Shown here one piece after another: positions 1-32,819 of a DNA stretch of 64,000 nt. Under the pieces are notes generated by a model. That model did not search any database and had not been told where the DNA came from. It saw only the letters and a list, made by a program, of their open reading frames with translations. Within the stretch, counting starts at the first letter, position 1, and every line of letters begins with the position of its first letter. The stretch lies in sequence record LC727698.1; one strand, given 5' to 3'. A program made the position numbers and the translations under genes.

Positions 1-5
1 GAAGT

Positions 6-374
6 GTGCTCGACCTAAAAGTTAACGGGGTAGTAGTAGGGCAAGCTTTCCCGCTCTACAGCACAAAAACCCAGCGTAGCTGGAACGCAAGCATGCACGC
101 TACCGTTAACGGTGTAGAGGTGCAGTTTGCACAGGAAGGCGTGTTCAGTGCAATCCGCATTGCACGGGCATTCGAGGATGCAGTAAAGTATGCCGTTAGC
201 AACGGCGAACAAGGACAGCCCCTCCCCGCCCCGGCAGCACAGTCCGATACCCCGGCAACGGCAGAAGCGCAAGCAGAAGCCCCGGCGGCGCAGTCCGACG
301 AGGCGCCGGAGACCCCGGCAGCTGAAGCTAAGCGCGTCCGCAAAGGCGGCAGCAAAGGCGGCAGCAAAAAGTAA
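6..374 (+). CDS. Hypothetical early protein, probably 5'-truncated by the window edge; paralog of 5919..6380
   Basis: Shares TKTQRxW...QxGVFSAIRIAR with 5919..6380; GC-rich codons; Ala/Pro/Glu linker and Lys-rich tail; terminator follows. Confidence 0.8.
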   Translation: MLDLKVNGVVVGQAFPLYSTKTQRSWNASMHATVNGVEVQFAQEGVFSAIRIARAFEDAVKYAVSNGEQGQPLPAPAAQSDTPATAEAQAEAPAAQSDEAPETPAAEAKRVRKGGSKGGSKK

Positions 375-474
375 GCGCTGCTAACACAGGAAAGGGGCAG
401 TTGCCCCTTTCCTTTTATGTCCTAGTTGTAAATGCAAATTACTCTTATTTGCATTTGCACAAGTCAATCTCCTG

Positions 475-502
475 TTGCATTACTGCGGTAAGATGTTAGT
501 AT
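475..502 (+). promoter_or_regulatory. Sigma70-type early promoter
   Basis: TTGCAT-N16-TAGTAT with extended TG, upstream of AGGAG RBS of 543..791. Confidence 0.6.
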
Positions 503-542
503 GTGTTTAGCAGTAACACATAACTAGCAGGAGCAATAGACA

Positions 543-791
543 ATGGCTAAAGTATTGCATGTTAACAGCATCGGCAACATCGCCGAAGTGTTTACATCTG
601 TAGACCTCGATAGCGCCTTGTTGCACGCAATCAAGCGCTGTGCAATGATGGGCAAGGTTAATGTTGTTGGTCCCAACGCTCCTGTGTTTGCTAGCCACTA
701 CGACGCACTGACAGCGTACGACGTGCAGTGGCGCCTAGTTCCTCCGGGCTGCGGCGTTACTTTGTACGTCATCGCCGAGGACAACAACTAA
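543..791 (+). CDS. Hypothetical protein
   Basis: ORF with GCAGGAG RBS directly behind a promoter. Confidence 0.75.
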   Translation: MAKVLHVNSIGNIAEVFTSVDLDSALLHAIKRCAMMGKVNVVGPNAPVFASHYDALTAYDVQWRLVPPGCGVTLYVIAEDNN

Positions 792-802
792 GGAGAGACA
801 TA

Positions 803-1105
803 ATGAATCTCGTTCATCTGTGGATCAACGGGCGTGCTGTGACTGCCCGCAAGGTTGTCAGTAAACACACTGTCCGCAATCCGAACAGTCCGATCGATAT
901 CGAGACTATCGACGTTGTTCGACTGCGTCTGCCCCGCGGTGTGCGTGCTAGCAGTTGGGCACTCCGTAAGGCAGTGTACCAACTCATGGAGCAAAGCTGT
1001 AGCTGCTCGAGAGACTGTTGTGGACACTGGTTTGGCGGCGCACGCAAGATCTACATTAACGGCAGAGACATCAGTGTCGTTGCCGGGTACCAGCGCAATT
1101 ACTAA
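803..1105 (+). CDS. Hypothetical protein with CxCxxDCCG motif
   Basis: AAGGAG RBS before ATG 803; SCSCSRDCCGHWF motif; terminator follows. Confidence 0.75.
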   Translation: MNLVHLWINGRAVTARKVVSKHTVRNPNSPIDIETIDVVRLRLPRGVRASSWALRKAVYQLMEQSCSCSRDCCGHWFGGARKIYINGRDISVVAGYQRNY

Positions 1106-1324
1106 AGGAAAGGGGGCAACTGCCCCTTTCCTTTTATCCATTAATGTGCAAACGCGAATTATTCTTATTTGCACAGGGCAGTGAGATGCGAATGCAAACA
1201 AGAGGCATTCTTGATACGGTCGGGTGATAATAATTGTTCACAAAAAGAAAAAGCTTGCGTTATGCTACACAGATGCTAATATGTGTATTGCAGTGCCTAT
1301 AAACATTAATAGCAGGATAAGAAA

Positions 1325-1645
1325 ATGGTTGACTTCAAAGGTTTTAACTGGGACGCACTAGTCCCGGAGGACAACGTTTCCACAGTTTCCATTAAAAATC
1401 ACTACGAGGAACTCCTACAAAGTTTTGTTGACAACGGCATAGACTATGTGTTAGTCCGGCTGTCCCAGGAACTGCCGCACTACGAGGATTCGGATTATCC
1501 CTGCTACAAATTGGTTGACAAGTATGCAGGATGGATAGTAGGCTGGGACTACTACGGATTTGTTGTGGAACGCATGGACACGCACCTTTTCTTTGACAAC
1601 GGCACTGCAAGGGGTGTAATGGACTTCTTGGAAGCCAACGGCTAG
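1325..1645 (+). CDS. Hypothetical acidic protein
   Basis: Promoter TTGCGT-N16-TAATAT (1255-1282), CAGGA RBS, terminator at 1651-1678. Confidence 0.75.
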   Translation: MVDFKGFNWDALVPEDNVSTVSIKNHYEELLQSFVDNGIDYVLVRLSQELPHYEDSDYPCYKLVDKYAGWIVGWDYYGFVVERMDTHLFFDNGTARGVMDFLEANG

Positions 1646-2088
1646 CACAAAAAGGAAGGGGCGCAAGCCCTTTTCTTTTGTCTGCAATTTCTGTGCAAAT
1701 AAGAACTATTACGGTTGTGGTAAAAGCACAATGCAAATAAGACGCATTCTTGATTAGGCCTGATAATAAGTTCTTATTAACAACAAAGAAACTGAATAAG
1801 AATAATTCTGAAAAAAAATAACCCTGCAGCGTAACACAAAGAGCTTGCAATTTGTAAGCCCTTTTTAATATGCATTTGTTAAGATTAGTTCTTATTTGCA
1901 ATGATAATATCCCCGCCACGCAAATAAGAACTAATCTTAGAACAAATATTCACTTGATTTTTCTCCCAATATAGTGTATGTGTATATTAGATAAGATTAA
2001 GTCTTGTTTGCTTGTTACATTTTATATGTTGCAATGCTAGGGCAATGACAATATTATATGTACAGCAACACAAAACAGGAGATATAAC

Positions 2089-2394
2089 ATGACAGCAGAA
2101 TTGAAGCGGTTGTTAGAGATTTTTCCAACCTTTAAATCATTCATTTATGCTAAAGGGGCATATGGCATTGATGTTTGGAAGGCTACAGGTAGTGTTACTT
2201 TGGAACAGGTAACCAATGCTGTTAATGCAGGTAATGCAGAATGGCAATGTAAAGGTGATCCAACATGCAGCCTGGAACAAAACAGCATGTATATTTTCAT
2301 TACTATTCAGGAACCAGACTACACAGGAATGGTTGATATTGATATTTGTGTAAAGATTACTAACGGTAATGAAGTAAGTTATCAAATAGCATAA
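2089..2394 (+). CDS. Hypothetical protein
   Basis: Promoter TTGCAA-N17-TATTAT (2029-2057), CAGGAG RBS, terminator at 2396-2426. Confidence 0.75.
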   Translation: MTAELKRLLEIFPTFKSFIYAKGAYGIDVWKATGSVTLEQVTNAVNAGNAEWQCKGDPTCSLEQNSMYIFITIQEPDYTGMVDIDICVKITNGNEVSYQIA

Positions 2395-2612
2395 TAAAGG
2401 AAAGGGGATTAATTCCCCTTTCCTTTTATGTATAATATACTTATAAATAAGAATTAATTTTATTTAATTAAAATTAGAATAATTCTTATTTGCACGATCC
2501 CGCGCTTATAACACAAGTATGTTACAAAAGCAAGAATAAAATTAACTTGACACCTATATGTAGAATATAGCACAATGTGTTTATAAATTATATTACTACA
2601 GGAGTGTTAACC

Positions 2613-2984
2613 ATGTTCAAATGCAAATTGTTTGTAATAGATCCTATTTATAACAACCTTTGCTACACTCAACAAATATGGCTCGATAGTGACATAAATG
2701 TGTGTAGCCAAATAAAGCGTATTATTTCTGACGCAGAATTGGCATGCGCAAACAGGATAGTAAATAATCCTCATAGTCCACTGTGCGTTAAATCGGCAGC
2801 ATTAAAAATGGTTATGGACGGGCGCATTGACATCGAACTCAAAGATGTCAATAGTTACGTTGATCAATATAAAGACATTCTTCCTAGCACAAATATTTTG
2901 GGTGTTTTTAAACCGACGTTTTTATCTAACTGGAAAGAAGAGTGTGAACTTTATTTCCTCACTTGTGTTGAAAAAGACAATTAA
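2613..2984 (+). CDS. Hypothetical protein
   Basis: CAGGAG RBS favours ATG 2613 over the tracked 2577. Confidence 0.7.
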   Translation: MFKCKLFVIDPIYNNLCYTQQIWLDSDINVCSQIKRIISDAELACANRIVNNPHSPLCVKSAALKMVMDGRIDIELKDVNSYVDQYKDILPSTNILGVFKPTFLSNWKEECELYFLTCVEKDN

Positions 2985-2995
2985 TATAATATAAT

Positions 2996-3283
2996 ATGGA
3001 ATATGATTTAAAAAATATTGTTTCGAAGACTATCTTATCTAATAAAATTAAGATAGTCTCTTTACGTACTGTAGTAAAAGCTCAATATAAAAGAGTAGAC
3101 TTCCATTATAAGATAGAATGTGAAAATAGTTCTGCAAAACGTAATTTAGCACTTGCCCGTATATGCAAGCCATTAGAACACACATTAGGTTCAAAACTTG
3201 TTTATGTAGATGTTGTGCCTATCAAGTTTAAGAAAGATGAAATGCCATCTACTATTCTATCGGTAAGTGTAATGACTAGTTGA
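2996..3283 (+). CDS. Hypothetical protein
   Basis: ORF co-oriented and adjacent to the previous gene. Confidence 0.6.
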   Translation: MEYDLKNIVSKTILSNKIKIVSLRTVVKAQYKRVDFHYKIECENSSAKRNLALARICKPLEHTLGSKLVYVDVVPIKFKKDEMPSTILSVSVMTS

Positions 3284-3434
3284 TATTTGGATTTGATATT
3301 TGGAAATATAATAGTAATTCTTATTTGCAATTATAATAAATTCTTATTTACTTTTAAAATAAAAGCAAATTCTAGTTGCATAGCTAGCGGCACTGTGCTA
3401 GTATATTAAAAAATAAAGACAGGAGTGTTATTAC

Positions 3435-3617
3435 ATGCAAACCAAAGCAACCGAGTTGGCAGTAGGCGATGTTGTTTTCTACAATGGCATGAAAATGACT
3501 ATCCAGAAAATTTCTAAAGGTCGGTGTGCAATAGATATTACACTAGTAAATACTTTGGCTAAACTCACATCTTATGTGACAGTCGACTATGACGAAGAAT
3601 TTGAAGAAGTATTATAA
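3435..3617 (+). CDS. Small hypothetical protein (beta-rich, SH3/KOW-like pattern)
   Basis: Promoter TTGCAT-N17-TAGTAT (3376-3404), CAGGAG RBS; ELAVGDVV pattern; terminator at 3635-3663. Confidence 0.7.
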   Translation: MQTKATELAVGDVVFYNGMKMTIQKISKGRCAIDITLVNTLAKLTSYVTVDYDEEFEEVL

Positions 3618-3660
3618 TGCAGAAATTATAGTCATAAGAAAAGGGGCAATGCCCCTTTTC

Positions 3661-3900
3661 TTATAGTCCCAACAAATGCTTGCCACTTTTGACTTGCATC
3701 ATACGCACTTTCTTTTTGCGCATTTGCGTTCTTACGTTCAGGCTGTTGGGACCTTTGAAGCTATACAGTATTTCAGTAGTCCCGTCTTCATAGTTGCGTA
3801 CCACATTTGCAACAATTTGACTGCCTTCCTGGAACGCTTCGATAAACACGCAGTAATTGAAATTTTCCTTGTTAGCGTTATGTGCGCGTAGTTGCATCAT
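3661..3900 (-). CDS. Hypothetical protein
   Basis: Minus-strand GCAGGAG RBS and TTGCAT-N16-TATACT promoter; converges on the bidirectional terminator at 3635-3663. Confidence 0.7.
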   Translation of the reverse strand: MMQLRAHNANKENFNYCVFIEAFQEGSQIVANVVRNYEDGTTEILYSFKGPNSLNVRTQMRKKKVRMMQVKSGKHLLGL

Positions 3901-4253
3901 TTTCTGTTACTCCTGCGTTGTTTTGCTTTGTTATGTGTAGTATACGCTATGTGTGTGCTAATGCAAGAATTTTCTTCCATTTTCTTTCAAATAAAATGTT
4001 ATTAGCATCTATTCTGTTATAACATTTTTTACGACTTCATGTTTTGCAAATAAGAATTAATCGCATTTGCATTCCTACCTATCTGCCTAAATTTTAGGCA
4101 GCCTGGGTGATTGTCTCCCCCGCCCTATTACTGGTCTCTGTATAAAGATAATAGCATATTTGTATCTGCATGCAAGCATTTTTTGTAGAATTTTCCTCTT
4201 GACATTCCTTGCTGTAGGCTACATTATGCACACACAGAGCAGGAGATACCATT

Positions 4254-4634
4254 ATGGCACTCATAGCATTAGTAGCAACCGCATATGACAAAGAAGGCGA
4301 TAAGTTCGACTATGTTCGATATCTTAAAGCTCATATCAATTTTGTGTCTGCTCAAGATCAACTGAAAGAATGGATCAAAAACAAAATTGATGCAAGTATA
4401 GCAGAAGTTAAAATCGGATTACGTGCAGAAATCGAAGTATTGGCCTATTTGGGAAACTATATAAGCCATAGTCAACGGATTATTAGTCCCGCCGGGATCA
4501 TCATGTACATTGTTCTTGATGAGAAGTATGTTAATGAACTTCACGGTCAAATTTCTAATGCAATTGATTGTGAAGAAAAGAAACATGTAATAAAGAAAGA
4601 AGAAAACGTCACTTATATTGATTTTAAAAAATAA
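4254..4634 (+). CDS. Hypothetical protein
   Basis: GCAGGAG RBS; 126-aa ORF. Confidence 0.75.
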   Translation: MALIALVATAYDKEGDKFDYVRYLKAHINFVSAQDQLKEWIKNKIDASIAEVKIGLRAEIEVLAYLGNYISHSQRIISPAGIIMYIVLDEKYVNELHGQISNAIDCEEKKHVIKKEENVTYIDFKK

Positions 4635-4669
4635 CTTGCATTAGCTGTAATGTATATGTATTATGTACT

Positions 4670-4827
4670 CAAGTTTGCAGCAAGACGTATTAATTTGTTT
4701 TGCTGTTAGTTGTAACTCCTGCTACCAAGTATGTGTTGAGCTAATGCTCCTGACTTGGTTCTTGGTACACTGGTTTGGGTGTACCGTTCTTGAGCTGCAA
4801 AGGGCTTGCCCGGAGCAGCTTTTTTTT
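4670..4827 (+). ncRNA. Candidate small RNA (~155 nt)
   Basis: Promoter TTGCAT-N17-TATTAT (4636-4664); hairpin GGTACAC/GTGTACC; GAGCTGC/GCAGCTT stem plus T-run; no RBS-led ORF inside. Confidence 0.4.
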
Positions 4828-4907
4828 GACCAATATTATTCATTTGACAAAAAATAATAATTAAAAATATAATAGCTTAGTGTATAACTTCCCGTATTAG
4901 GCTAATT

Positions 4908-5279
4908 ATGAAATTTGTTATTGCTTCTATTGCATTGTCTTTGTCTACACTAGTTTCTGCAGAATCTATTACTGAAGTTAAGATAACTAACGAAACATGC
5001 CTTACACTTCTGGAATTATCTAAGATTCATGTCGATATGGTAGTAAATGAACATATGAATGCAATACAAATTGCATCTCATATGGATATTGTATCTAATT
5101 TATATAAGAATAATAATAGTAAATGGCTTGCGTTCTTGCAGGCTCAAGCAAATATTTCAAAATTAATTGATAACGTATATGAGTTTTCATCTACTGAAGA
5201 AAGAAAGATTATCCCTCTAGCCATATTTAACGGTTGTATGGAAAGAGTTAGTAATACTTTTGAAATATATAAGAAATAA
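4908..5279 (+). CDS. Putative exported protein with signal peptide
   Basis: N-terminus MKFVIASIALSLSTLVSA-E; promoter TTGACA-N18-TATAAT (4844-4873). Confidence 0.7.
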   Translation: MKFVIASIALSLSTLVSAESITEVKITNETCLTLLELSKIHVDMVVNEHMNAIQIASHMDIVSNLYKNNNSKWLAFLQAQANISKLIDNVYEFSSTEERKIIPLAIFNGCMERVSNTFEIYKK

Positions 5280-5280
5280 T

Positions 5281-5586
5281 ATGTATGTATATGTAGTCCA
5301 CGGAATAGTCAATACAGGCGTTGAGACTAATATTTGTGATATAGAACGTTACGTTACAGTTAACGACTTCCATGCTGTAGCAAAGTTTCTTAATTTTAAA
5401 GAACATATAGCAGTAAACCCAAACTTATATATACGATTAATTACTACTGGATTTAATACTAAAAAGAACATATTAGAATTAAATTTATCCAAAAAAGAAT
5501 ATGTAGTATCAGGTTTTAAAGTTACATCAACTGATATAAATGAAGAATATTACCTGTGTAGAAGGATATTTAAGTTACATGATTGA
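5281..5586 (+). CDS. Hypothetical protein
   Basis: ATG immediately after the upstream stop, suggesting translational coupling. Confidence 0.55.
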   Translation: MYVYVVHGIVNTGVETNICDIERYVTVNDFHAVAKFLNFKEHIAVNPNLYIRLITTGFNTKKNILELNLSKKEYVVSGFKVTSTDINEEYYLCRRIFKLHD

Positions 5587-5918
5587 ATTTATATTAAAAT
5601 CCCTTTTATTAACTTCAGTTGTCAGTGTTGGCATACTACTGATATTCATTATTATTTCATTGTTAATGTTTGGCTTAGCACCTATAGTTCCGTTCCTTAT
5701 TTAATTTTAATTATTTGCAAGCAAATGCAAATGCGAATAATTCTTATTATCCAGCAGGCTACTGTACCTAATCTTCGTTAGATAAAATCTATTAGAATCT
5801 ACAAAGTCCATTAAAACGTTCAATTGTACATGGTGGCCAGATCTGCATATACTACACACATGAAGCAAGCAAACAGCGCTTCATAAACAAACCCAAATAC
5901 AGCTAGGAGTTCCAAATC

Positions 5919-6380
5919 ATGACCAAAGCAACCGTTACCGTCGAGCAATCCGCAATCAAACTGGTCCGCCGCAACCTGGAAGGGCACCGGCAGGCCCTGC
6001 TGCTGAACGGCGTCGAAGTAGGCAGCAGCGAAGCGTTCTACAAGACCAAAACCCAGCGCACCTGGTCGGCGAAGATCGACGCCAACATCAACGGCAAGGA
6101 CATCGTCCTCGAACAGAAAGGCGTGTTCAGCGCGATCCGGATCGCCCGGTCGATGGAACAAGCAATCCTGTTCATCCTGACCGACGGCAAAGAAGGCGCC
6201 GAGATGCCGGCCAGCACGCTGAGCAAGGAAGAGCAAGCCCACAACCTGGTCAAGGCAGTAGTCCAGGTCGCCGACCACGCTGTCCAGTCCGCTGACAAGG
6301 ACAGCAGCGACGACTGGTATGCCGCCCCGGCGAAGAAAGGCAGCTCGAAGAAGCGCAAAGAAGCCCAGCCGGAAGCATAA
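5919..6380 (+). CDS. Hypothetical early protein, paralog of 6..374
   Basis: AGGAG RBS; about 57% GC on a hand-counted line; GAAA-loop terminator at 6394-6419. Confidence 0.8.
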   Translation: MTKATVTVEQSAIKLVRRNLEGHRQALLLNGVEVGSSEAFYKTKTQRTWSAKIDANINGKDIVLEQKGVFSAIRIARSMEQAILFILTDGKEGAEMPASTLSKEEQAHNLVKAVVQVADHAVQSADKDSSDDWYAAPAKKGSSKKRKEAQPEA

Positions 6381-6536
6381 TCCGGACTACACCGAGAAAG
6401 CACCGAAAGGTGCTTTCTCTATGACTGTTAATAACAAATATTCTTATTTGCATCTATTCTGACATAATAATAACTCTTATTTACAAATCATACTGAATAG
6501 TGTATTTTACACACTAAACATTGTAGGTAATATAAA

Positions 6537-7025
6537 TTGAATATATTTGTGACTGACACAAATCCTTATGTATGTGCCAAACATCATTGTGATGTTCATC
6601 TAAGAAAGATGATAGTAGAAACAGCACAATTGTTAAGCACTACTCATTATATAATAAACGGATATACTCCTGCATATAAACCTACTCATAAAAATCATCC
6701 ATGTGCCGTTTGGATTAGAGAAAGTTCAAAAAACTATGAATGGACTTATGAACTTCTTACAAGTCTTATAAATGAATTCGAATATAGATTTGACAAACAA
6801 CATGCAACTAAAATGCATCTTTTGTCATTAAAAACTATACCAAAACTCCCTGATATAGAAAGAACAGAGTTTGTCTTAGTTATGCCAGACGAATTTAAAA
6901 CAGGTAATGTAACACATTCATATCAGTTATATTTAAATGACAAATTTAAAGAATGGGCATCGAGATCTAACAGACCCATTTATGCTACATATACAAAGAC
7001 ACCTAAACCATATTTTATTAGTTGA
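6537..7025 (+). CDS. denV: Pyrimidine-dimer DNA glycosylase / endonuclease V family protein
   Basis: MNIF..D.NP..CA.HHCD.H..KMIVETAQLLST.H and THKNHPCAVW motifs typical of this family. Confidence 0.7.
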   Translation: MNIFVTDTNPYVCAKHHCDVHLRKMIVETAQLLSTTHYIINGYTPAYKPTHKNHPCAVWIRESSKNYEWTYELLTSLINEFEYRFDKQHATKMHLLSLKTIPKLPDIERTEFVLVMPDEFKTGNVTHSYQLYLNDKFKEWASRSNRPIYATYTKTPKPYFIS

Positions 7026-7097
7026 AATATAATAAAAATGATTGACATGTACATAAGATCATATTATGCTGTATAAAACAGCAAGGAGTAGATATAC

Positions 7098-7331
7098 ATG
7101 TACCGCAAACTGAATACAAATCCACGCCCAATGCCAAAAACAAAGGCAATTCCAACTAAATTTGTCATTCAGTACACTGCACGGAATAAAGCAACAGAAA
7201 GTTTGTTCAAAAAAAGAACTATTACATTACATGCGTTTGGGCGTCTCGATGCACAAACACTCCTATCAAAACATATCCGAAAAAATAATTTGGAATTAGG
7301 TGTAATTATTGATTTCGGTGAAACAGTTTAG
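7098..7331 (+). CDS. Small basic hypothetical protein
   Basis: Promoter TTGACA-N17-TATGCT (7042-7070), AAGGGAG RBS, terminator at 7343-7369. Confidence 0.75.
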   Translation: MYRKLNTNPRPMPKTKAIPTKFVIQYTARNKATESLFKKRTITLHAFGRLDAQTLLSKHIRKNNLELGVIIDFGETV

Positions 7332-7566
7332 TTAGTGACATAGGGAAAGGGGCAGTTGCCCCCTTTCCCATTATTAAGTCAAATGCAAATGCAAATACAA
7401 ATTATTCTTATTTGCACAGATTATACCCGGTGCTGAGCAGTAATGAACTTTGAATATTGAAAAGTGCCTAAGAAGTAGTTCCGGTTGTATCTAAAACACT
7501 ATGTGTTATTATACATATAGTGTTTTTATTTCTTATAATTATATTCAATAATAATGGTAAAAATAT

Positions 7567-7890
7567 ATGATTGAAGTAATTAAATGCATTATATGTAATG
7601 AATCACCCCGTCCCGGTGCATTTGCAGCATTTATTACTCAAATGCGTCAAGTAGTAAAACCTCATGCAACTATAACTAGTTGGAATATTCTGCCCGGCAT
7701 TAATGATGATCCAACTAGTTATATTCATGCATTCAGTATAAAATCAAAAACAGCATACGATATTAATCAAGCGGTTACCTTATTACTAATGTCATTATAT
7801 AATGCTAGTGAATATAAGACTAGCTACATACCTACTTCGTTTAAAGACTATGAATCTACAATAAAGCATTTATCTAAGATCAAACAATAA
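7567..7890 (+). CDS. Hypothetical protein
   Basis: 107-aa ORF with CxxC near the N-terminus. Confidence 0.55.
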   Translation: MIEVIKCIICNESPRPGAFAAFITQMRQVVKPHATITSWNILPGINDDPTSYIHAFSIKSKTAYDINQAVTLLLMSLYNASEYKTSYIPTSFKDYESTIKHLSKIKQ

Positions 7891-7954
7891 CCAGTTGCAT
7901 ATTTACAAATATACATGTATGCTAATATGTATACACAATCATGAGTACATTATC

Positions 7955-8110
7955 ATGACAAAAGAAATTGCTTTTACTGAAGGATTAAAAGCAGGCACTC
8001 AAATAAAAGAAGGCAAAGCTATCCTAACTGACTTCTTTCGATATTTCAATTCCTTACCAACTAATATGAGAACTTCTTTTATTATCGGTATCAAAACCGG
8101 TAGAAACTAA
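7955..8110 (+). CDS. Small hypothetical protein
   Basis: Internal ATG of the tracked ORF 7895..8110. Confidence 0.4.
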   Translation: MTKEIAFTEGLKAGTQIKEGKAILTDFFRYFNSLPTNMRTSFIIGIKTGRN

Positions 8111-8149
8111 TAAGCATATTAATTTTCATATTTTGGTAGACAAAGGTAC

Positions 8150-8470
8150 TCACTGGATGCATACTGTACACATACAGAACATACGGAGTACAAAGGGATG
8201 GACGCGCGCAGCCTGCTTAGCCTTATCGAAGACCTCCCTATAGCTGTCTTCGGCAGCACAATGGATATTGTTCATCGAGTCAATTTTGAAGCTCTGGACA
8301 ATGCCGCCCGCACCGACGGGGTAAAAGTCCACGAAGACGGAACCAACCGTTATACAGACGCTTTTGTCGATTGTTGGCTCCGCAGCGTCGAAACAGTTTT
8401 GGCCTGTTGCGATTTTGTGACCGAGGATGCCGCTAAGTGGTATATCGAGCACGGTGTCAAGTTTTGACAT
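8150..8470 (-). CDS. Hypothetical protein (GC-rich island)
   Basis: GAGG RBS before ATG 8470 (MSKLDTV...). Confidence 0.5.
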   Translation of the reverse strand: MSKLDTVLDIPLSGILGHKIATGQNCFDAAEPTIDKSVCITVGSVFVDFYPVGAGGIVQSFKIDSMNNIHCAAEDSYREVFDKAKQAARVHPFVLRMFCMCTVCIQ

Positions 8471-8565
8471 CCTCTGCCTCGCCTGCAGATAAAAAGGTTG
8501 ACGTAGACTAGCAATGGACACATAATAATTACAACGCAACGCAACTAGCCCTGGAGGGCAAAACT

Positions 8566-8685
8566 ATGTGCAACATCCAATGCATGAACAGCAAAGCAGG
8601 CGAGTCCTACGCATGGATTTGGAGCGATAGTGATAACGATATCTGCTACGAAGTCATCTTCAGGCATGGCCAGGTCATTACCTAG
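8566..8685 (+). CDS. 39-aa hypothetical protein
   Basis: Promoter TTGACG-N17-CATAAT near 8498-8526, GGAGG RBS; hairpin at 8724-8748. Confidence 0.5.
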   Translation: MCNIQCMNSKAGESYAWIWSDSDNDICYEVIFRHGQVIT

Positions 8686-8764
8686 GTTTGGCTCGGATAT
8701 GATATTGTAGCCTAACACCAACTAAAGCCCCGTCCCAGGCGGGGCTTTACCGAAGGAAAAGATC

Positions 8765-8974
8765 ATGATCGAACAACTGAAAGCCATGCTCGTAGCGCAA
8801 CGCATGCGCATGAACCAACTCGAAAAACTGCGCTACACCGGACGGGTCGCTGGCGAGTTGCATGCCCACGCCAGGGAATTGTGTGAAGCCTTGGAACTGG
8901 CAATTGCAAATGCCCAGTGCCTGGAAATGCGCAAGTGCGAAGAGGGCACCCTGCACGCCCTCTTCGCACAATAA
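8765..8974 (+). CDS. Hypothetical protein
   Basis: AAGGA RBS; host-like codon usage. Confidence 0.6.
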   Translation: MIEQLKAMLVAQRMRMNQLEKLRYTGRVAGELHAHARELCEALELAIANAQCLEMRKCEEGTLHALFAQ

Positions 8975-9007
8975 CCCACCGCGCACAACCCGACAAGGAA
9001 ACTAACC

Positions 9008-9499
9008 ATGAGCACTACCATCCCCGATTCGATTCATCCGAGTGATCTTCCTGAAATCGGGCTGCCATTAGCCGACGGAACCTTCTTTGCCCGCCATTGG
9101 CTCAATGGCAAGGAATACGCCTACGTCGATCTCGGCAAAAGCGCCGAGTTCACTGGAGAATGGGGCGAGTATGGGCAGGACGTGCTCGGCGCCGTTAGCT
9201 ATCGAGACGGAGCTTCGAATACGGTCGCCATGGCTGAAGCTGGCAGCCCGATTGCCAAGCAAGCTATGGAGATCGGAGAAGGCGTATTCATTCCCTCTGT
9301 TCTGGAACTGGCTCTTCTGTTCTCCGCCAAGCAAGCAGGCGAGTTGTCTGGTTTCGCAGATCGCTGGTATTGGTCGAGTTCGCAGGACTCCGCTAACGCC
9401 GCCTTCAACATGGACTTCGGCGACGGCTACACAAGCGGACACGTCAAGTACGTCGACTTCCGTGTCCGCCCCGTTCGCAAGATTCTCATCCTTCAGTAA
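9008..9499 (+). CDS. DUF1566 (Lcl C-terminal, C-type-lectin-like) domain protein
   Basis: PS..EL..L, WYWSSS and C-terminal VRPVR motifs; AAGGA RBS. Confidence 0.75.
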   Translation: MSTTIPDSIHPSDLPEIGLPLADGTFFARHWLNGKEYAYVDLGKSAEFTGEWGEYGQDVLGAVSYRDGASNTVAMAEAGSPIAKQAMEIGEGVFIPSVLELALLFSAKQAGELSGFADRWYWSSSQDSANAAFNMDFGDGYTSGHVKYVDFRVRPVRKILILQ

Positions 9500-9635
9500 T
9501 CTAGCCCCGGCGAGCAAACATTGCCCAGAAGGTGCTAGCTGAACGCCTGGCGGAACAATAAATAAAAGTTGACGTAGCCGAGCGAAGGGCGCATAATAAT
9601 TACAACGCAACACAACAAGCCCCGGAGGCGCAACC

Positions 9636-9836
9636 ATGACCCAGATCGTAGATGTCAAGCAAATTGCAATTGATGCAAACCGTCGCCCTGCCTACAATGC
9701 GGTCATGGTGCGCTGGTTGATGCAGGAAGCTGAATTGCACCGTAGCTGCGGTCGCACCGCTACCCTGTTCTGCATCGTTCGCAACCGCCCTGACGGCACA
9801 CAGCGCCAGCTTGTGCAGCTTGTGGCTAGCGAGTAA
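9636..9836 (+). CDS. Hypothetical protein
   Basis: Second copy of the TTGACG-N17-CATAAT promoter near 9569-9597; GGAGG RBS. Confidence 0.65.
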   Translation: MTQIVDVKQIAIDANRRPAYNAVMVRWLMQEAELHRSCGRTATLFCIVRNRPDGTQRQLVQLVASE

Positions 9837-9866
9837 CCTCTACAACCCTACGCCCAGGAGGCCGTC

Positions 9867-10031
9867 ATGAATGCTGCACTAGCCAGACTTCAAAACGAAC
9901 GTTGCATGTTACTTCGCCGGATGCTTTGCAGCAAATGGCACGGATTCTGTTTTGCAGGTCACCCTTGGGCAGAACAAGCCCGCAATCTGCACAACGAAGC
10001 CAAGTGCATCCGCGAACATCACAGTAAGTAA
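9867..10031 (+). CDS. 54-aa hypothetical protein
   Basis: AGGAGG RBS; MNAALARLQNERCMLLRRMLC...HHSK; below the ORF-track length cut-off. Confidence 0.55.
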   Translation: MNAALARLQNERCMLLRRMLCSKWHGFCFAGHPWAEQARNLHNEAKCIREHHSK

Positions 10032-10171
10032 TCCAATCCCACTGGATCTTACTGAGGATAAGATAATGACCTACGCAGAACTAATAAAGAAACTACATAA
10101 CATAGAAGCTGGTCATTATCTTTCCAATAATGAAGTTAAGTTTCAAAACACAGGCAAGCAGGAGAACTAAA

Positions 10172-10468
10172 ATGAATTGCGAACATTTTTTCCTCAGTGC
10201 AGTAAAAGAACTTCTGTCCCTGTATCACATTAAGAGTACTATTCAACCGTCTTCTGATAACCTCGAAGAATTGGTAGTAGTTATTACTGATACTGCTTTT
10301 GGTACTATCAGATATGTTGGCAATAACACCGGATCAGTTATGTGTTATACGATGGGTGGTAATTACCCGTTCTATGACACTGAGTGTTATTCCAACCGAA
10401 CTATGATAGATTGTGTTATGTTGATATCAGTTTGGTATTCAATGTTTCCGGCATTTGATAATAAGTAA
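10172..10468 (+). CDS. Hypothetical protein
   Basis: CAGGAG RBS before ATG 10172; preceded by a 34-aa ORF at 10066..10170. Confidence 0.6.
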   Translation: MNCEHFFLSAVKELLSLYHIKSTIQPSSDNLEELVVVITDTAFGTIRYVGNNTGSVMCYTMGGNYPFYDTECYSNRTMIDCVMLISVWYSMFPAFDNK

Positions 10469-10724
10469 TATAATGGTTGCTCTATATAGTGTATGATGTT
10501 AGTTGTATACTATATAGAACAATTCTATTAACTGGGAGGGATTAATAAAAATATTTTCTTGACAATAGTAGGTATAGGATAATTCTATTATACTGAAAAT
10601 TGTTATAGAAAAATATAGTTGACAAATTTTGAAAGTGATGAATTCCGACACCGGGTGGCTGTAAGCTGAGACGGTTGACATTCGGTGAGTGGTGGATTGT
10701 TACGCGGGTAGATTTTGAAATTCA

Positions 10725-10803
10725 CCGTCTATAGGTTCACTTATGAGTCATTTCCGTCTATAGGTTCACTTATGAGTCATTTCCGTCTATAGGTTCACTT
10801 ATA
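10725..10803. repeat. 29-bp tandem repeat, about 2.7 copies
   Basis: CCGTCTATAGGTTCACTTATGAGTCATTT at 10725, 10754 and 10783 (partial). Confidence 0.95.
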
Positions 10804-11069
10804 ACACATATAAGTTACTTCCATTCGCTCATAAGTAACGTTCGATTATAAGTATCTTTTGCTTATATGTTCACTCATAGGTTATGATAAATCACATTCA
10901 ATACTGTTACTACACACATTCACACCTATAAGCCATTTCACTGTATTGTACTGTACTGTACCGTATCATATACTTCATACAATTCTCTTCTTTATCATGC
11001 TGCTAGTAAACAATCTATGTTATTATGCGTAGAAATGTTGTATAGTGTATTATAGTAAGTATAGTATGA

Positions 11070-12461
11070 TTGCTATACAATATTCCTAATCTCATATTGT
11101 TGTTTAACTTTCCAAATCTGTCTCGGCTGTTCTACTTTATGTCTCATAGTTACGTATTTTCTTTATCTAGGCGTATACGTAATAAACAAAGTAACTTTAT
11201 AAAAAATTACTATAACTCATTAAAATGGGTATACGGTGAAAGAAACATTTATAGATATATTACACGATACTCATTATGTAGAGCACTATATAGAGGCTAT
11301 TAAATAAAAATGAGTGGTATAATAAAAACATCTGTGTATTATAACAATATTAATATATCTTCTTATGTTACAATCATTAAACTAGCTACAACATATAGGT
11401 TAAAAGAATTTTCACACGTTGGAAATTTAAATATATCTTTAATACGCAATAAAACTTATGTTACATTAAGTGCAAGTAAATATGGTATAAAAATTAATGT
11501 TAATATTAGAAATATCTAGTAGAATAAGGGTTATACGATATCATACATTCCTTAATGCTAAATATACACTTTTTAGTAGTATACCGAATTTAAGCATGTA
11601 TAAAATAGGCATTGATGTTGATGATAACGTTATATCTATAATAGTTTACCAAACATATGAATAAAATATTTTTAATTTCTAACAATATTACTTTAATGAA
11701 GTATAACATACTTTACTATTATTATTCTGCTATTGCAGTTAATACACATAAATTCTGGAAGGATAGAAGCTACGATATTGAAATAACATTTACAGGAGGC
11801 AATGCAATTATTCTGGAGTTGTTATTTCTAAATTGTAGAATAAAGGTTAGGAAACAATATGACTACGAATAAGATGATACACTGCTCGCGTATTGTAGGG
11901 ATGAACAGAATACGAAAATACATTGTTGTATTTTATAGATGTAAGTTTAAAAGTTTATATATACAGCTTAATAACGAGCTTGGCTATTATGGAAGTTTAA
12001 GTTTAATGTATAGAGACTTTGATTCAGATATACTTTTTCGTATAATTCGATAATTATGAATATATTTAAAATTAGTGTTTTATCTTATGAAACAATGCAA
12101 TTAGATACATTGCTTCGATATATTACAATACCCCAACATGTACCTATAAAGACTGTTTCTATAGTATATTTAAATGATTCAAAATTTGAAGTATACATTA
12201 TCTTTGATAATATGAATTATATAATACTCACACATGAATAGTATTTTATTAAGATCTAGAATTCTATCATACGAAACTATAAATTCTTTTTTTAATATAC
12301 TCTCGGCTATCAGTAGTAAGCGTAATCATACCTGGTCTGCTGTACGCAGCGTATCGTGCGAGTGTTTCAGAGACAATAATTACACACGGGTAAATTTCTC
12401 TGTCGAAACCTTTGCAGATAATACATTTATTTTAGCCAAATATAGAAGTAACAAAGCATAA
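11070..12461 (+). CDS. Array 1 of tandem 55-77 aa micro-ORFs (11070, 11310, 11497, 11657, 11859, 12056, 12234)
   Basis: Co-oriented, abutting or overlapping ORFs; includes untracked 11497..11664 (55 aa). Confidence 0.5.
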
Positions 12462-12783
12462 CTCTATATTAAATATACACTAGGGTGAAGGGTGAATAGT
12501 ATAAGATTGAAACTTGTATATAAGAAAGTGGATCATACATGATAAAATGAATAAACATGTAGGAATGGGTTATATATGTGAAATGGATGTGTGATTGTGT
12601 TGTGGCGAAGTGAAATGAAGTGGATGAAGTGATAGTATAGCATGGAGTGGATTATCTACTAGCACAATTGATTTAAAAAAATGCGTGCTAGCTCCACCAT
12701 TCTAAAAAAAAATAAAATCTTGATATGCAAATGTATGCAGTTTTGCTATAATATTATTATATCTAATATAACGGAATTTTAAA

Positions 12784-13158
12784 ATGATATTTGTTTTTGG
12801 TAGTAATGAAGCGGGTCGACATGGCGCTGGTGCAGCAAAATTTGCACTACAGCGTAAAGGTGCAATCTACGGTATTGGTGTAGGTCATCATGGACAAAGT
12901 TATGCAATTCCTACTAAAGATCATAACATAATTACACTACCGTATGCTGATATAGAAAAATATGTTAGGCAGTTTTTAGAATATGCGAAAAATAATCCAC
13001 AATTGCAATTTCAGGTAACCCGAATTGGTTGTGGTTTAGCAGGTTTTACTGATAACGAAATAGCTCCGCTGTTTGTTACTGCATCGGATAATTGCTATTT
13101 CGATAGCGCCTGGTCGCCTTATCTTCCTAGCAATTTTAAATTTTGGGGAAGTATATGA
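12784..13158 (+). CDS. Macrodomain-like phage protein (IFVFGSN...GxHGxGAA family)
   Basis: IFVFGSNEAGRHGAGAA and TRIGCGLAG motifs; extended -10 TGcTATAAT at 12744-12752. Confidence 0.7.
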   Translation: MIFVFGSNEAGRHGAGAAKFALQRKGAIYGIGVGHHGQSYAIPTKDHNIITLPYADIEKYVRQFLEYAKNNPQLQFQVTRIGCGLAGFTDNEIAPLFVTASDNCYFDSAWSPYLPSNFKFWGSI

Positions 13159-27200: not shown

Positions 27201-30200
27201 TAATGTATTTTCAGTATCGTAATAATGCCATATTGAATCAGTTAAATTCTCAAAGTTTTGTAATAGATTATCATCTTGTATTAAATAACCATCCGCCTCA
27301 AATTTACCGTACCAATCGTTTGTGCGAATGCCGCGCAACTGAAGTCTTTTTTGTCTAGAGTATAGTAACGGATCGTATATAGTATCATTAAATATAGTTT
27401 TGTTATCAAAAAGTATAGCGTGTTCTGTATCACTCGTAGAAACACGGAATAAATATATTCCAATTTGATCGCTTTCGTGAGATACAGAGATAGTTCTTCT
27501 GTCCCTGTCTATAATAGTATCATTAGGCGATATAGCATATCCATTTTGATCTAATATACTATAAACACCATTTGATATTCTTTCTACCTTCTCAGGATAA
27601 CCTTCGTTTACTTCTAATGCAATTTTAGAAGCGCCCGGGGCGACGAATAAAGTGTTATTTGGTGCCCATTGAGTAGTTGCCCAGAATAAGAATCCCTTAG
27701 CAGAAGTAACCCAATTTAATACTTCTCCTGTAGTTTGGTCTATTTCATTAAATTTCCATCCGTTTAATTCTAAATACTGACCATATCCTATTAGGAAATC
27801 AAATACATCCTGAGGAGTATCTAATTCACTTCCGTATTCTATTTCGTAGAATTCGCTATAATCACCTTCATTAACATAGTTTACTGTTATACCGCCGGTT
27901 GCAGGAAGTGATTTTAGACGCATCCAGTTATCTTGATTAAATTTTCCCTGTGCTGCAATAACAACGCATTGATAGTAGACTCCATTGTACCGAACTACAT
28001 CTCCATAGTTGTACTGAACATTTGTGTCATAAATTGTGAAATTAGAAGTTGTTCCGCCTACATTTATTGTAGTTCCAGATACTAATGTACTTCTAGGAAC
28101 AACTTTAAATACAGGATTTAATACATCATATCCTCTTACTTCAAATTTTCCATATTCGTTTACACGTATTGCAACACCGCTGAATACGTATTCAGTTATA
28201 GGTTTGCCGGTGTATACTCTTACATGTATATTTTCGTTAGGTAACAACATGCTAGAATTAGTAGAGCCGCCAGATATACTATCAGCATATACGTTCAATG
28301 TATCTACATTGGTATATCCTGCAAGTCTATGTGCTAAACAAACATCTAACGAACGTATCTTACTACCGAAATTGTATGTAACATCTTGTTTACCCATAAA
28401 GGACAATCTATCAAACACATATTGTTGATATCCAGAGTTTAACACTACATTTCCATTTACCACTTCGCCATGGGCATATGTGTTACTATTAGCAATTCTT
28501 GTATATGTAGAACTTGATATATACTGCTTAGCGTTTATGGGTGCTCTTGTGTCGTCAAGTGGATTCCAATATCTTTCACCGAAATCTGCAGGTTTCATTA
28601 AATATAACAATTCTAACTGAACAAATGGCCATTCCGAATTGGTATACCATGCTTCTTCTACAGGACTATTGTCCCCGAATATCCATTCGTCTTGAAGTGT
28701 TTCTATTTCTTGATTAGAAAGCTGCGGAACTATACCTAACTCCTCTGGTGTTTTTAAATCACCAGAAGCATCCGACGGTATTAGATTTGGAACTAATCCA
28801 GTCCTTTTATACTTTTCATGGGTGCCTGCTCTATTGCCACGGCGAATTATACCGTTTTCAATATCAGTCCACATATCAGTGTTTTGTGAAGTATAATCTC
28901 CATTATATTCTTCATCCCACCAGGTCGGCTTTTCTACAAACCCTAACATTTCCCACGGTGTTTTATTAGGTGTTAGTGTGTTATAGTAGTATTTGTATAA
29001 TCCGCGCCAGGATCCGATAGAATCGTTACTAACTGGACGATAATTCCAAGTTTTCCAGTTTAACGAATTAAATCCAGAATATAATTTATAATTAAGACTA
29101 TTCTTTAAACACCATTTTAAGAAATAAGGTTTTACTATTTCATTATATTGTTGCAGAGTATACCCGTTTTCATAAAATTTTGTCGGTTTTACATCGTCTA
29201 ATTTAAGTAATAAATTGTAATCTAGTCTAAATTTGTCGGCAATATTGTTATATATTCTTGTTTCGAATTCTAATAATAGATCATCCCTAATATCGCCGTA
29301 GGTGGGTATTTTAGAACCATCATGACCTAAAATTACTTCTGTAGGAGTAACATAACTAGTATCTACAATTATTTTAGGTTGATATACAGGATAACATCCT
29401 ATTTTAGAAGGTGTTGCAGGTATTTTTGCAGAAAGTATGTTATTGTATATACGAACAATATACGACGTATTCGAAGGTGTACTAGACAGTTTAACAACTA
29501 AATTATTATTAGAATACGATAGTATATAGTCTTTATCTATTGTTAATGTATTGTAATCAACAGAAGTGCCAGATCTTCTAAATACAAGAACAGAAGAATC
29601 CATTTTACCTAATATGTTATTAGTCGGTACTAATAATGTATTTCCTACTGATGCGCTAGAGAAATTGTATTCATCGTATACATCACCCCATGCAGCCATA
29701 TATGACTGTGTGAAGGCACCATTGTATTCGAACGTGCTAGTAACGCGATTTATCACATATGTAAACAATGCATCTATGTTTACTGGGTTTGTATTTTGAT
29801 TTAAAGGCGTAGCTATTAATTCTTTTGCATATTTTATGAACTTATCTTTATATCTAGTATACTCGTCGCGTGCAAATCTTATAGCAGAATTTATATTTAA
29901 TTCTTCGCTAGAAGATACAAGCATTGTTTTTAACAATGGACTTCTGTTTTGTAGAATAAATGTACCTAAAGATTTGTCTTCAGCAGTATCTCTGTAATTA
30001 TTATTAGAACTATAAGGATCTCCTTTAAATCCTATTTGATTAGTCATTATACTAACAAAATGGTTTGTTAACTCATTCGACGAGTATTCATTTACTTCTA
30101 AGTTGTTAGGGTTATTCTCTAATTGTTGTGGAATTTGATAATACCCTAGTGCGTTATCTGGCAAAGCTTCTTTAGAATAGGTGTATGTTTGAATAACATC

Positions 30201-32813: not shown

Positions 32814-32819
32814 TTTTAG

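Follow-up and report, generated by a model that had tools for sequence, protein, structure and literature searches.

Fur-operator-like palindromes in a repeated early-promoter module of PA5oct-like jumbo phages

What controls the early genes of the PA5oct-type phages, which are candidates for therapy against Pseudomonas aeruginosa and whose early programme is almost wholly unannotated? The available part of the published PA5oct analysis lists only -35 and -10 boxes and terminators (PMC7318152). The question is raised by the intergenic spacers of Pseudomonas phage phi30-3 (LC727698.1; 284,544 bp, 33% guanine plus cytosine (GC)), a PA5oct-like jumbo phage whose first 64 kb (64,000 nucleotides, one strand; hereafter the window) are analysed here, with the rest of the genome added for genome-wide motif counts. 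An earlier examination of the window from its letters alone (hereafter the sequence-only reading) had described about 17 Fur-box-like operators in these spacers and had proposed that they either couple early genes to host iron status or serve as a sponge for host Fur. The present analysis describes a 27-bp palindromic site that forms part of a repeated terminator-site-promoter module, and weighs the candidates for its binder.

Window positions 1-8000 are 100% identical to positions 1-8000 of the record of Pseudomonas phage sp. 30-3 (phi30-3) and 96% identical to positions 28,019-36,077 of PA5oct, and they match nine other Wroclawvirus jumbo phages of P. aeruginosa likewise. The direct terminal repeat of PA5oct comprises 39,080 bp (1-39,080) and includes the gp34-gp105 block which, according to the PA5oct paper, is highly transcribed at 5 min by the host RNA polymerase, the enzyme on which this phage relies and for which the promoter boxes TTGAC and TATAATA are given (PMC7318152). 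The region that carries the motif is thus the right-hand part of the terminal repeat, among the early genes. The sequence-only reading had found the operators but missed both this location and their role in recombination at cassette boundaries (see below).

The palindromic site and the early-promoter module

The five 19-mers on which the sequence-only reading was built are present at 431, 1151, 4049 (minus strand), 5730 and 7394, and a sixth match lies at 2472, for a total of six at no more than three mismatches compared with 0.11 expected from shuffled sequences. When the copies are aligned, the 19-mer turns out to be the central part of a longer, imperfect palindrome of 27 bp, TGCAAAT-RMRAAT-W-ATTYKY-ATTTGCA, in which four hexamers stand in 6-bp phase around one central A/T: GCAAAT, then AAGAAT or GCGAAT, the central base, and the mirror image. 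Weaker AAT and ATT triplets extend the phase outward, and the flanking TGCA and the 6-bp-phased GCAAAT runs noticed previously belong to this full palindrome. The copies display a consistent left/right asymmetry, and their mismatches are non-compensated (GCG opposite CTT in several copies), which argues against a role as an RNA or DNA hairpin. An RNA element was rejected on this ground and because Rfam yielded no match in window 1-13000 at E <=0.1. A promoter was likewise rejected, given that the arm TTGCA(T) resembles a -35 box yet has no -10 box at 16-18 bp.

The most conserved core, TTCTTATTTGCA, is present in 11 copies at no more than one mismatch, all in window 442-7416, and 24 of its 30 matches in the complete genome fall within one contiguous 25.3-kb stretch (record positions 266.8-284.5 kb plus 1-7.4 kb). 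A position weight matrix (PWM) was built from the phage sites themselves, with a score of at least 16 defining a distinct site. With this matrix, the 25-kb stretch yields 26 distinct sites, and none appear in any of 20 shuffled versions. The other 259 kb contain two weak matches, one at window 37797 (score 21.5, inside a coding open reading frame (ORF)) and one, below the threshold, at record position 247270 (14.4). In PA5oct, 25 sites are detected, all of them between 8,682 and 35,447, inside the terminal repeat. The window has 14 sites at or above the threshold and about five weaker ones in 1690-2014, so that the previous estimate of about 17 was a fair one, and all sites are indeed intergenic relative to credible genes. 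The 16 of 19 matches to a Fur box reported for the best copy are correct against AATGAGAATnATTCTCATT, a GAGAAT-type box that also appears in papers on Xanthomonas and Acinetobacter; they correspond to 16 of the 18 specified bases. With the same box, the possibility that the motif occurs at background frequency in an AT-rich genome was tested: matches of at least 14/18 are found at 16 positions in the 25-kb stretch compared with seven in the other 259 kb, a 23-fold higher density, and matches of at least 15/18 at seven positions compared with none. The motif is thus no product of AT-rich background, and it resembles Fur operators specifically.

The site occupies the middle of a repeated module. 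An intrinsic terminator (AAAGGGGCAGTTGCCCCTTTCCTTTT and variants) comes first, separated from the site by about 12 bp; some 21 bp beyond the site stands a -35 box (mostly TTGCAT), then, after 16-17 bp, a -10 box such as TAGTAT, and finally a conserved leader that ends in GCAGGAG before the ATG. The module recurs in the window at 380-545, 1105-1325, 2395-2613 and elsewhere, and also in two metagenomic contigs, L097 and L098 (see below). In the 39-kb terminal repeat of PA5oct-like phages, it precedes the majority of early transcription units within the right two-thirds, and from gp38 to gp101 of PA5oct one or more sites are found at nearly every early transcription unit. The asymmetric copies are oriented with the gene, the inverted copy at 4045-4071 preceding the only minus-strand gene. 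A conserved operator-like element at a fixed position before most early units provides a first handle on the control of the early programme.

In 15 of 28 cases collected from phi30-3 and the contigs L096, L097 and L098, the first base of the -35 box follows the centre of the site at a distance of 24-37 bp, which places the centre near -64 to -71; in the remaining cases the centre lies farther upstream. The upstream position proposed in the sequence-only reading is borne out, but the range of 25-100 bp given there is too loose. Placement just after a terminator holds for six of the spacers, on the basis of a terminator scan and direct reading. Most sites do not overlap promoters, as had been stated; only the one at 6459-6485 touches a -35-like hexamer. 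Promoters with an upstream site mostly have TTGCAT, TTGCGT or TTGCAA as the -35 box (e.g., 475-480, 1255-1260 and 3376-3381), whereas in site-less early promoters this box is mostly TTGACA or TTGACG (4199, 4844, 7042, 8498, 9569 and the spacers of contig L099). This pattern is a tendency noted on direct reading of the sequences and has exceptions at 2547, 4634 and about 7900. The difference would fit either a need for a bound helper or a bias against GA contexts with a modified G (see below). Some protein very probably binds the site, and the site very probably forms part of a portable promoter module.

Resemblance to Fur operators and host Fur as a candidate binder

The hexamers of the phage sites form an F-F-x-R-R array of 6-bp units with an AAT-n-ATT core, which is the architecture of Fur-family operators; the Fur boxes and operator arrays of Proteobacteria (GATAATGATAATCATTATC; arrays of NAT(A/T)AT hexamers; 7-1-7 model) share with them the phased hexamers ending in AAT, the order F-F-x-R(-R) and the core. 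The PWM (GCAAAT, RMRAAT, W, ATTYKY, ATTTGC) contains at least three phased NAT(A/T)AT-type hexamers in the order F-F-x-R and a 9-1-9 dyad. Further phased hexamers often lie outside the core of the site, and some variants are exact 6-6-1-6 arrays, such as GCAAAC-T-ATTCTT-ATTTGC.

The bare pattern TGCAAATNNNAATNATTNNNATTTGCA, with the inner triplets left free, was searched in one genome per species from 185,579 bacterial and archaeal species and was found at 79 loci, mostly in Gamma- and Betaproteobacteria. The free inner hexamers of these loci (n = 158) include GATAAT (46), AATAAT (24), GAGAAT (13), GCAAAT (12), AAGAAT (7) and GCGAAT (5). Among the 93 ORFs that start beside the loci, 18 encode TonB-dependent receptors (Plug/TonB) and nine encode ZnuA (in Clostridia); FTR1, IucA/IucC, PepSY_TM and siderophore-type binding proteins are other neighbours. 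Given these inner hexamers and the iron-uptake neighbours, the 27-bp architecture is a Fur-family operator in bacteria. Half-sites of the form ATTCTTATTTGCA are present in bacterial operators of this kind, directly upstream of long ORFs of TonB-receptor size (676 amino acids in locus L031 and 818 in locus L026).

Fur has been crystallised on TTAATTGCAAATCATTTGCAATTGC (TGCAAAT-C-ATTTGCA), where Arg57 reads the G of TGCAAAT and Tyr56 the Ts opposite AA, and a natural operator in the same study contains ATTCGC (PMC4506495); GCAAAT and GCGAAT are therefore genuine Fur hexamers. The outer heptamer of the phage sites, TGCAAAT, is the half-site of this structure, and the bases contacted in the crystal, G at heptamer position 2 and AA at positions 5-6, are present in it and in inner TGCGAAT or TGCAAAT but not in the commonest inner heptamer, TAAGAAT. 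In contig L096 the inner hexamers are GCAAAY, yielding GCAAAC-A-ATTTGC, a crystal-type Fur dimer site.

A scan of IMG/VR with TGCAAATNNNAATNATTNNNATTTGCA recovered only four contigs, unrelated, with palindromes that look like textbook Fur boxes, e.g., GCAAATGATAATCATTATTATTTGC. Fur-box-like palindromes such as TGCAAATGAGAATCATTCGCATTTGCA also lie beside the genes for the small and large terminase subunits in three unrelated viral contigs of 54-58% GC (L007 235-314, L008 6907-7149 and L010 4187-4223); Fur-type sites may be more widespread in phage genomes, or these palindromes may be packaging-site repeats. A full-text search of the literature for Fur boxes in phage genomes returned nothing comparable. 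Compared with the motif by eye, the sites of other host factors (sigma-54 -24/-12 elements, IHF, Fis, the TyrR box, the ARG box, the Zur box, PsrA and the LexA box) were rejected for misfits in spacing or key bases.

A protein that acts on early promoters at the time of DNA entry must come either from the host or from the virion. Host Fur acting from upstream is the best single guess, and a tentative one, short of an even chance. Fur-Fe2+ is favoured because it is already present at DNA entry and reads such hexamer arrays, because it is the only known protein with this heptamer, core and 6-bp phasing, and because the phage has no Fur homologue of its own: tblastn with P. aeruginosa Fur at E <=10 matched no PA5oct-like genome, and a phage-encoded Fur was rejected on this basis. 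A sequence 100% identical to P. aeruginosa Fur is present at 34498-34899 of the unannotated record of Pseudomonas phage Y6 (OQ572408.1), which probably includes host chromosomal DNA.

According to this proposal, Fur-Fe2+ would bind the operator arrays, the middle part of the portable module before most early units. Centred near -64 to -71 with an imperfect -35 box downstream, it would serve as an upstream helper that activates the promoter, counters MvaT/MvaU silencing of the 33%-GC DNA, or insulates the promoter from the neighbouring terminator, rather than as a promoter-occluding repressor or the ligand of a decoy, and early expression would be tied to the iron state of the host. The anatomy of the element, its fixed geometry, its distribution in the genome, its likeness to Fur operators and the breakpoints are direct observations; protein binding, the identity of the binder as Fur and the direction of its effect are inferred. 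Fur sites that activate promoters or relieve silencing from an upstream position are on record, E. coli ftnA being the case cited in PMC6922518. The phage sites share with ftnA-type sites a position upstream of the core promoter and AT-rich DNA expected under a nucleoid silencer; the parallel is one of position, with MvaT/MvaU binding and activation at the phage sites hypothetical. If host Fur is the binder, the phage would read the iron state of the cell at entry, the efficiency of infection would depend on iron, which is in short supply in infected tissue, and the Fur regulon would be disturbed by the phage DNA.

The identification of the sites as Fur-type operators is backed by the architecture, the bacterial scan and the crystal half-site but not by the fit to the 19-bp consensus, the inner hexamers or the position relative to the promoter, and these and several other observations weigh against Fur. 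The usual Fur-box criterion for Pseudomonas is at least 14/19 matches to GATAATGATAATCATTATC (PMC6922518). Only two sites (5733 and 284007) reach this level against the P. aeruginosa/E. coli consensus, typical sites match at 12-13/19, and matches of at least 13/19 are barely enriched, at 10.6 per 10 kb in the stretch compared with 7.5 elsewhere. This misfit was first taken as evidence contrary to Fur, a view that was revised in the light of the bacterial scan, the crystal hexamers and the GAGAAT-type scoring. GATAAT accounts for 46 of the 158 inner hexamers in bacterial sites of the same outer pattern but for none of the 78 in 39 phage sites, where the inner hexamers are AAGAAT, AAGATT or AAGACT (about half), GCGAAT and GCAAAT, instead of the GATAAT or GAGAAT of Fur operators. 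The departure from GATAAT persists in divergent phages, and the phage consensus is not what Fur regulons select, given that AAGAAT never occupies both halves of a scanned bacterial site. In TAAGAAT, the most frequent inner heptamer, the guanine contacted by Arg57 of Fur is missing. In contrast to classical Fur repression, the sites do not overlap the -35 and -10 boxes; unlike known Fur operators, for which they remain putative equivalents, they lie upstream of promoters, and some 26 of them are gathered in 25 kb of viral DNA.

Modification of the phage DNA bears on the same issue. PA5oct DNA carries a modified guanine, probably 7-deazaguanine, and resists several restriction enzymes (bioRxiv 10.1101/2025.03.31.646159). 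Given this resistance and the genes for 7-deazaguanine synthesis encoded by the phage (folE, queD and queE), some or all guanines are modified. Such modification would change the major-groove reading of G and would make prediction from unmodified DNA unsafe; it could also explain the avoidance of G-A contexts such as GATAAT in favour of GCAAAT. Furthermore, the densest site clusters lie upstream of a single phage gene family (gp38/gp86/gp98), an arrangement that looks like autoregulation by a phage protein. The contig L099, from the same sample as L097, encodes a member of this family and a dozen early-type cassettes and has no motif in 5.5 kb, so that the site is dispensable for promoters of this type. 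Finally, within the 96%-identical genomes, 5.8% of the positions in sites are variable compared with 7.2% in other spacer DNA (p = 0.41), a comparison that is uninformative among such close relatives.

The Fur sponge is the weakest of the ideas considered and a most improbable one. The phage DNA would titrate host Fur and derepress host iron uptake, for instance to supply an iron-dependent ribonucleotide reductase, and phi30-3 does encode nrdA/nrdB. The same Fur-likeness speaks for it as for a Fur helper, as do the numbers: about 26 arrays per repeat, doubled by the second terminal repeat of each genome, and many genomes after replication. That multicopy Fur boxes derepress Fur regulons is the principle of the Fur titration assay (FURTA). 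A decoy, however, needs no fixed distance from a promoter, whereas the sites are locked in a promoter module at about -64 to -71 and confined to early units, and the inclination of the sequence-only reading towards a decoy fits this geometry poorly. Moreover, about 50 arrays early in an infection at low multiplicity would be few relative to a cellular Fur pool of the size found in E. coli, and a departure from the Fur optimum would be odd in a sponge. The main text of the PA5oct paper, in which 698 host genes are given as differentially expressed at 25 min in LB, does not mention iron, siderophores, pyoverdine or pyochelin (PMC7318152).

The gp38/gp86/gp98 family as a possible alternative binder

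The other conceivable source of an early binder is the phage itself, in the form of a protein with Fur-like DNA recognition, for which the gp38/gp86/gp98 family is the candidate; a phage-encoded regulator had been kept as a possibility in the sequence-only reading, and a phage-specified binder is only slightly less likely than host Fur. Paralogue alignment identifies gp98 (window 5919-6380), gp86 (6-374) and gp38 (L001 32763-33467) as a three-member family. These proteins consist of a conserved domain of about 100 residues (…NGVxVG…TQRxW…VFSAIRI…), a disordered linker and a Lys-rich tail. In an AlphaFold model the domain is a six-stranded sheet followed by a helix, at a predicted local distance difference test (pLDDT) score of 69. 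Each of the three paralogues has one of the three densest clusters upstream: gp38 is preceded by three near-perfect 27-mers spaced 47 bp apart, gp86 by four sites and gp98 by a single one. In PA5oct gp38 is a virion protein and could arrive with the DNA at time zero; the family might then regulate its own genes through the clusters, with the other early promoters switched up or off in the course of infection. Dispersed operators for a single phage repressor are a known design, as exemplified by C1 of phage P1. The sites described here resemble the C1 operators in that one short motif is repeated before many phage transcription units; they differ in that the cognate phage protein is a candidate, the sites lie upstream of the promoters instead of over them, and the phage is virulent.

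Tandem repeats accompany two of the clusters. An 18-bp unit repeated 3.4 times at 100% identity (L001 49380-49447) is located directly upstream of one, and 42-bp and 47-bp units (L001 32150-32342), the latter containing the palindrome, upstream of another. The "extensin-like" coding sequence (CDS) annotated across one of these repeats in PA5oct is probably not a gene.

Evidence from outside the Wroclawvirus group comes from metagenomes. The family has 13 representatives among 1.84 billion proteins, and none was found in a protein scan of IMG/VR; matches to giant Big_9/cadherin proteins look compositional. Contigs were recovered for five of the 13, and the homologues in L093, L095, L096, L097 and L098 are likewise preceded, at a distance of a few hundred bp, by motif copies or half-sites. 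In L096, L097 and L098 (47-49% GC), clusters of three to four copies precede the family gene by a few hundred bp, with arrays of four at a 29-bp period in L098, and single copies lie 86-123 bp upstream of small genes, inside the same module. The orthologous clusters of four divergent phages have invariant columns in the arms (GCAAA, ATTCTT and TTTGC) whereas the spacers vary, which, within the limits of sequence comparison, is the best evidence for selection on the site itself. The AAGAAT/GCGAAT consensus that departs systematically from the bacterial Fur optimum is kept in these divergent phages, and in L096, whose family member diverges most, the preferred hexamers are shifted as well.

Several findings run counter to a binder from this family. 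Its proteins have no recognisable DNA-binding fold: there is no Pfam match, no PDB sequence match and no significant Foldseek match (best E = 0.06, template modelling (TM) score 0.28), the top, non-significant Foldseek entries being sheet-type nucleic-acid binders. Scans of 81 early-region proteins detected no Pfam DNA-binding family and no regulator family by Pfam or PHROGs. The co-occurrence of motif and family is partly built into the search, given that the contigs were found through the family gene, and the family member in L099 is unaccompanied by the motif. The family is tiny, and for a protein unrelated to Fur to use the same heptamer, AAT-n-ATT core and 6-bp phasing would be a coincidence. 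The link between family and motif is an association, and the family is a speculative candidate; were it the binder, it would represent a new DNA-binding fold that mimics the Fur code.

A more elaborate scheme covers both candidates. The roughly 50 Fur-type arrays per packaged genome would wire the early genes through either Fur-Fe2+, as activator or anti-silencer, or a virion-delivered Fur mimic of a new fold, the gp38/gp86/gp98 family having converged on the Fur DNA code and possibly reading hypermodified guanines. As a whole this scheme is rather unlikely to be correct. With either binder, the operator would have a second function, as the joint at which cassettes are exchanged by recombination.

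Recombination at the module and associated features

Comparison of window 1-9000 of phi30-3 with PA5oct, PAC2, MIJ3 and Callisto revealed that all indels relative to these four relatives have a boundary at a motif copy or at a module that contains the motif. Callisto lacks window 1174-1883, with the crossover inside TTCTTATTTGCA (copies at 1162 and 1889). The extra cassette of PAC2 and MIJ3 has its boundary at 2407/2482 and is flanked by direct repeats ...gcaaactaTTCTTATTTGCAc; a 765-bp cassette in PAC2 is flanked by a duplicated terminator-site-promoter module. Past the site that ends at 7416, variable sequence sets in after 3-12 bp in each of the four relatives (divergence from 7419-7428 on). 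The module being repeated some 26 times, motif copies act as crossover points for the gain and loss of early-gene cassettes, and whichever protein binds the site, the module explains the exchange of such cassettes among PA5oct-type phages.

Promoter-early stem-loop (PeSL) elements, reportedly described by Arbiol et al. in 2010, are mobile regulatory cassettes of T4-type phages in which repeated modules of an early promoter and a stem-loop flank small early ORFs, and recombination between copies shuffles these ORFs. In phi30-3, too, a repeated promoter and stem-loop module flanks small early ORFs, and ORFs are gained or lost between relatives by crossovers in this module. It differs from PeSL elements by the additional 27-bp palindromic operator between the terminator and the promoter, and by its location in the 39-kb terminal repeat of a Pseudomonas jumbo phage. 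The system brings together two kinds of element known before, operators of a host type carried by a phage and mobile cassettes for early regulation.

These observations suggest a further possibility, namely that the site is purely a recombination repeat, a PeSL-like cassette junction with no dedicated binder whose copies are kept alike by duplication, gene conversion and recombination, and whose likeness to Fur operators is a by-product of an AT-rich palindrome. The breakpoints, including the crossover inside the 12-bp core and the direct motif repeats around the inserted cassette, speak for it, as does the fact that the entire module, beyond the site, is about 83% identical between phi30-3 and L098, while the sites show no excess conservation within close relatives. 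This explanation nevertheless seems improbable. Selection on the sequence itself is indicated by its dyad symmetry and 6-bp phasing, by the asymmetry of its left and right halves and by the invariance of its arms; AT-rich background fails to generate the motif (none in 20 shuffles, one or two weak matches in 259 kb), and the non-compensated mismatches speak against a hairpin; crossover at repeats is the expected by-product of any repeated operator. A protein-binding operator that is part of an exchangeable module remains the preferred reading. Table 1 lists the sites and module parts in the window.

Table 1. Palindromic sites, module components and associated gene in the window (window coordinates)
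Feature	Position	Strand	PWM score	Context
27-bp site TGTAAATGCAAATTACTCTTATTTGCA	427..453	+	31.5	Canonical module upstream of gene 543-791; centre 35 bp upstream of -35 TTGCAT at 475-480
27-bp site TGCAAACGCGAATTATTCTTATTTGCA	1147..1173	+	34.6	Left crossover point of Callisto deletion
Cluster of five to six full and half sites	1690..2014	both	13.8-20.4	440-bp non-coding spacer before gene 2089-2394; core matches at 1694 (-), 1732 (-), 1874 (+), 1919 (-) and 1986 (+); copy at 1889 is right crossover point of Callisto deletion
Two adjacent sites, 2442-2468 (weak) and 2468-2494 (strong)	2442..2494	+	19.3, 27.7	Upstream of gene 2613-2984; insertion point of extra cassette in PAC2 and MIJ3
Two overlapping-adjacent sites, 3303-3329 and 3326-3352	3303..3352	+	19.3, 19.9	Upstream of gene 3435-3617; centres 60 and 37 bp upstream of -35 TTGCAT at 3376-3381
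27-bp site, minus-strand reading TGCAAATGCGATTAATTCTTATTTGCA	4045..4071	-	36.6	Upstream of minus-strand gene 3661-3900; far upstream of gene 4254-4634
27-bp site TGCAAATGCGAATAATTCTTATTATCC	5726..5752	+	28.1	Upstream of gp98-family gene 5919-6380
Two sites, 6426-6452 and 6459-6485	6426..6485	+	21.0, 16.5	Upstream of gene 6537-7025 (Pyr_excise-like); after terminator-like hairpin at about 6395-6420 (direct reading; absent from terminator scan)
Best site TGCAAATACAAATTATTCTTATTTGCA with extra GCAAAT hexamer on left	7382..7416	+	35.7	Sole exact match in genome to degenerate 27-mer pattern
Intrinsic terminator AGGAAAGGGGCAGTTGCCCCTTTCCTTTT	388..417	+		First part of repeated module; listed in terminator scan as 388-413
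Similar terminator copies	1110-1135, 1654-1680, 2402-2427, 7343-7368			Listed in scan as 1110-1129, 1654-1674 and 2402-2421; 7343-7368 by direct reading, not in scan
Sigma-70-type early promoter of canonical module, TTGCAT-16-TAGTAT	475..502	+		Direct reading and scan
Equivalent early promoters	1255-1282, 2029-2057, 2547-2576, 3376-3404
gp98-family gene	5919..6380	+		Paralogue of gp86 (gene ending at 374) and of virion protein gp38

The module is also a practical landmark for annotation. In PA5oct and PAC2 several annotated CDSs of 30-45 codons cross sites or promoters, e.g., at window 3287-3409 (the equivalent of PA5oct gp92), and are probably annotation artefacts rather than genes.

Two further elements were noticed between the modules. 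A hairpin with a 15-bp stem at 3633-3665, located between the convergent genes 3435-3617 (plus strand) and 3661-3900 (minus strand), is flanked on either side by T runs and has the appearance of a bidirectional terminator. At 4634-4662, a promoter (TTGCAT-17-TATTAT) is followed by about 150 nucleotides without a credible ORF that end in a GC hairpin and a T run. This stretch (within 4634-4820) has a predicted folding energy of -56.6 kcal/mol (z = -3.87 relative to shuffles) and no Rfam match, and is a probable small RNA gene.

The gp86 gene spans the arbitrary start of the phi30-3 record (L001 49920-50000 plus window 1-374), and its pieces total 455 nucleotides compared with 471 in PA5oct, so that the ends of the record seem to be about 16 nucleotides short or different. 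The composition profile of this 33%-GC phage shows genes of 48-55% GC in window 1-1100, 5900-6400 and 8000-10000, including the paralogues gp86 and gp98. A mosaic of this kind suggests uptake of cassettes from phages of higher GC content, for instance those from which the contigs L096-L099 derive.

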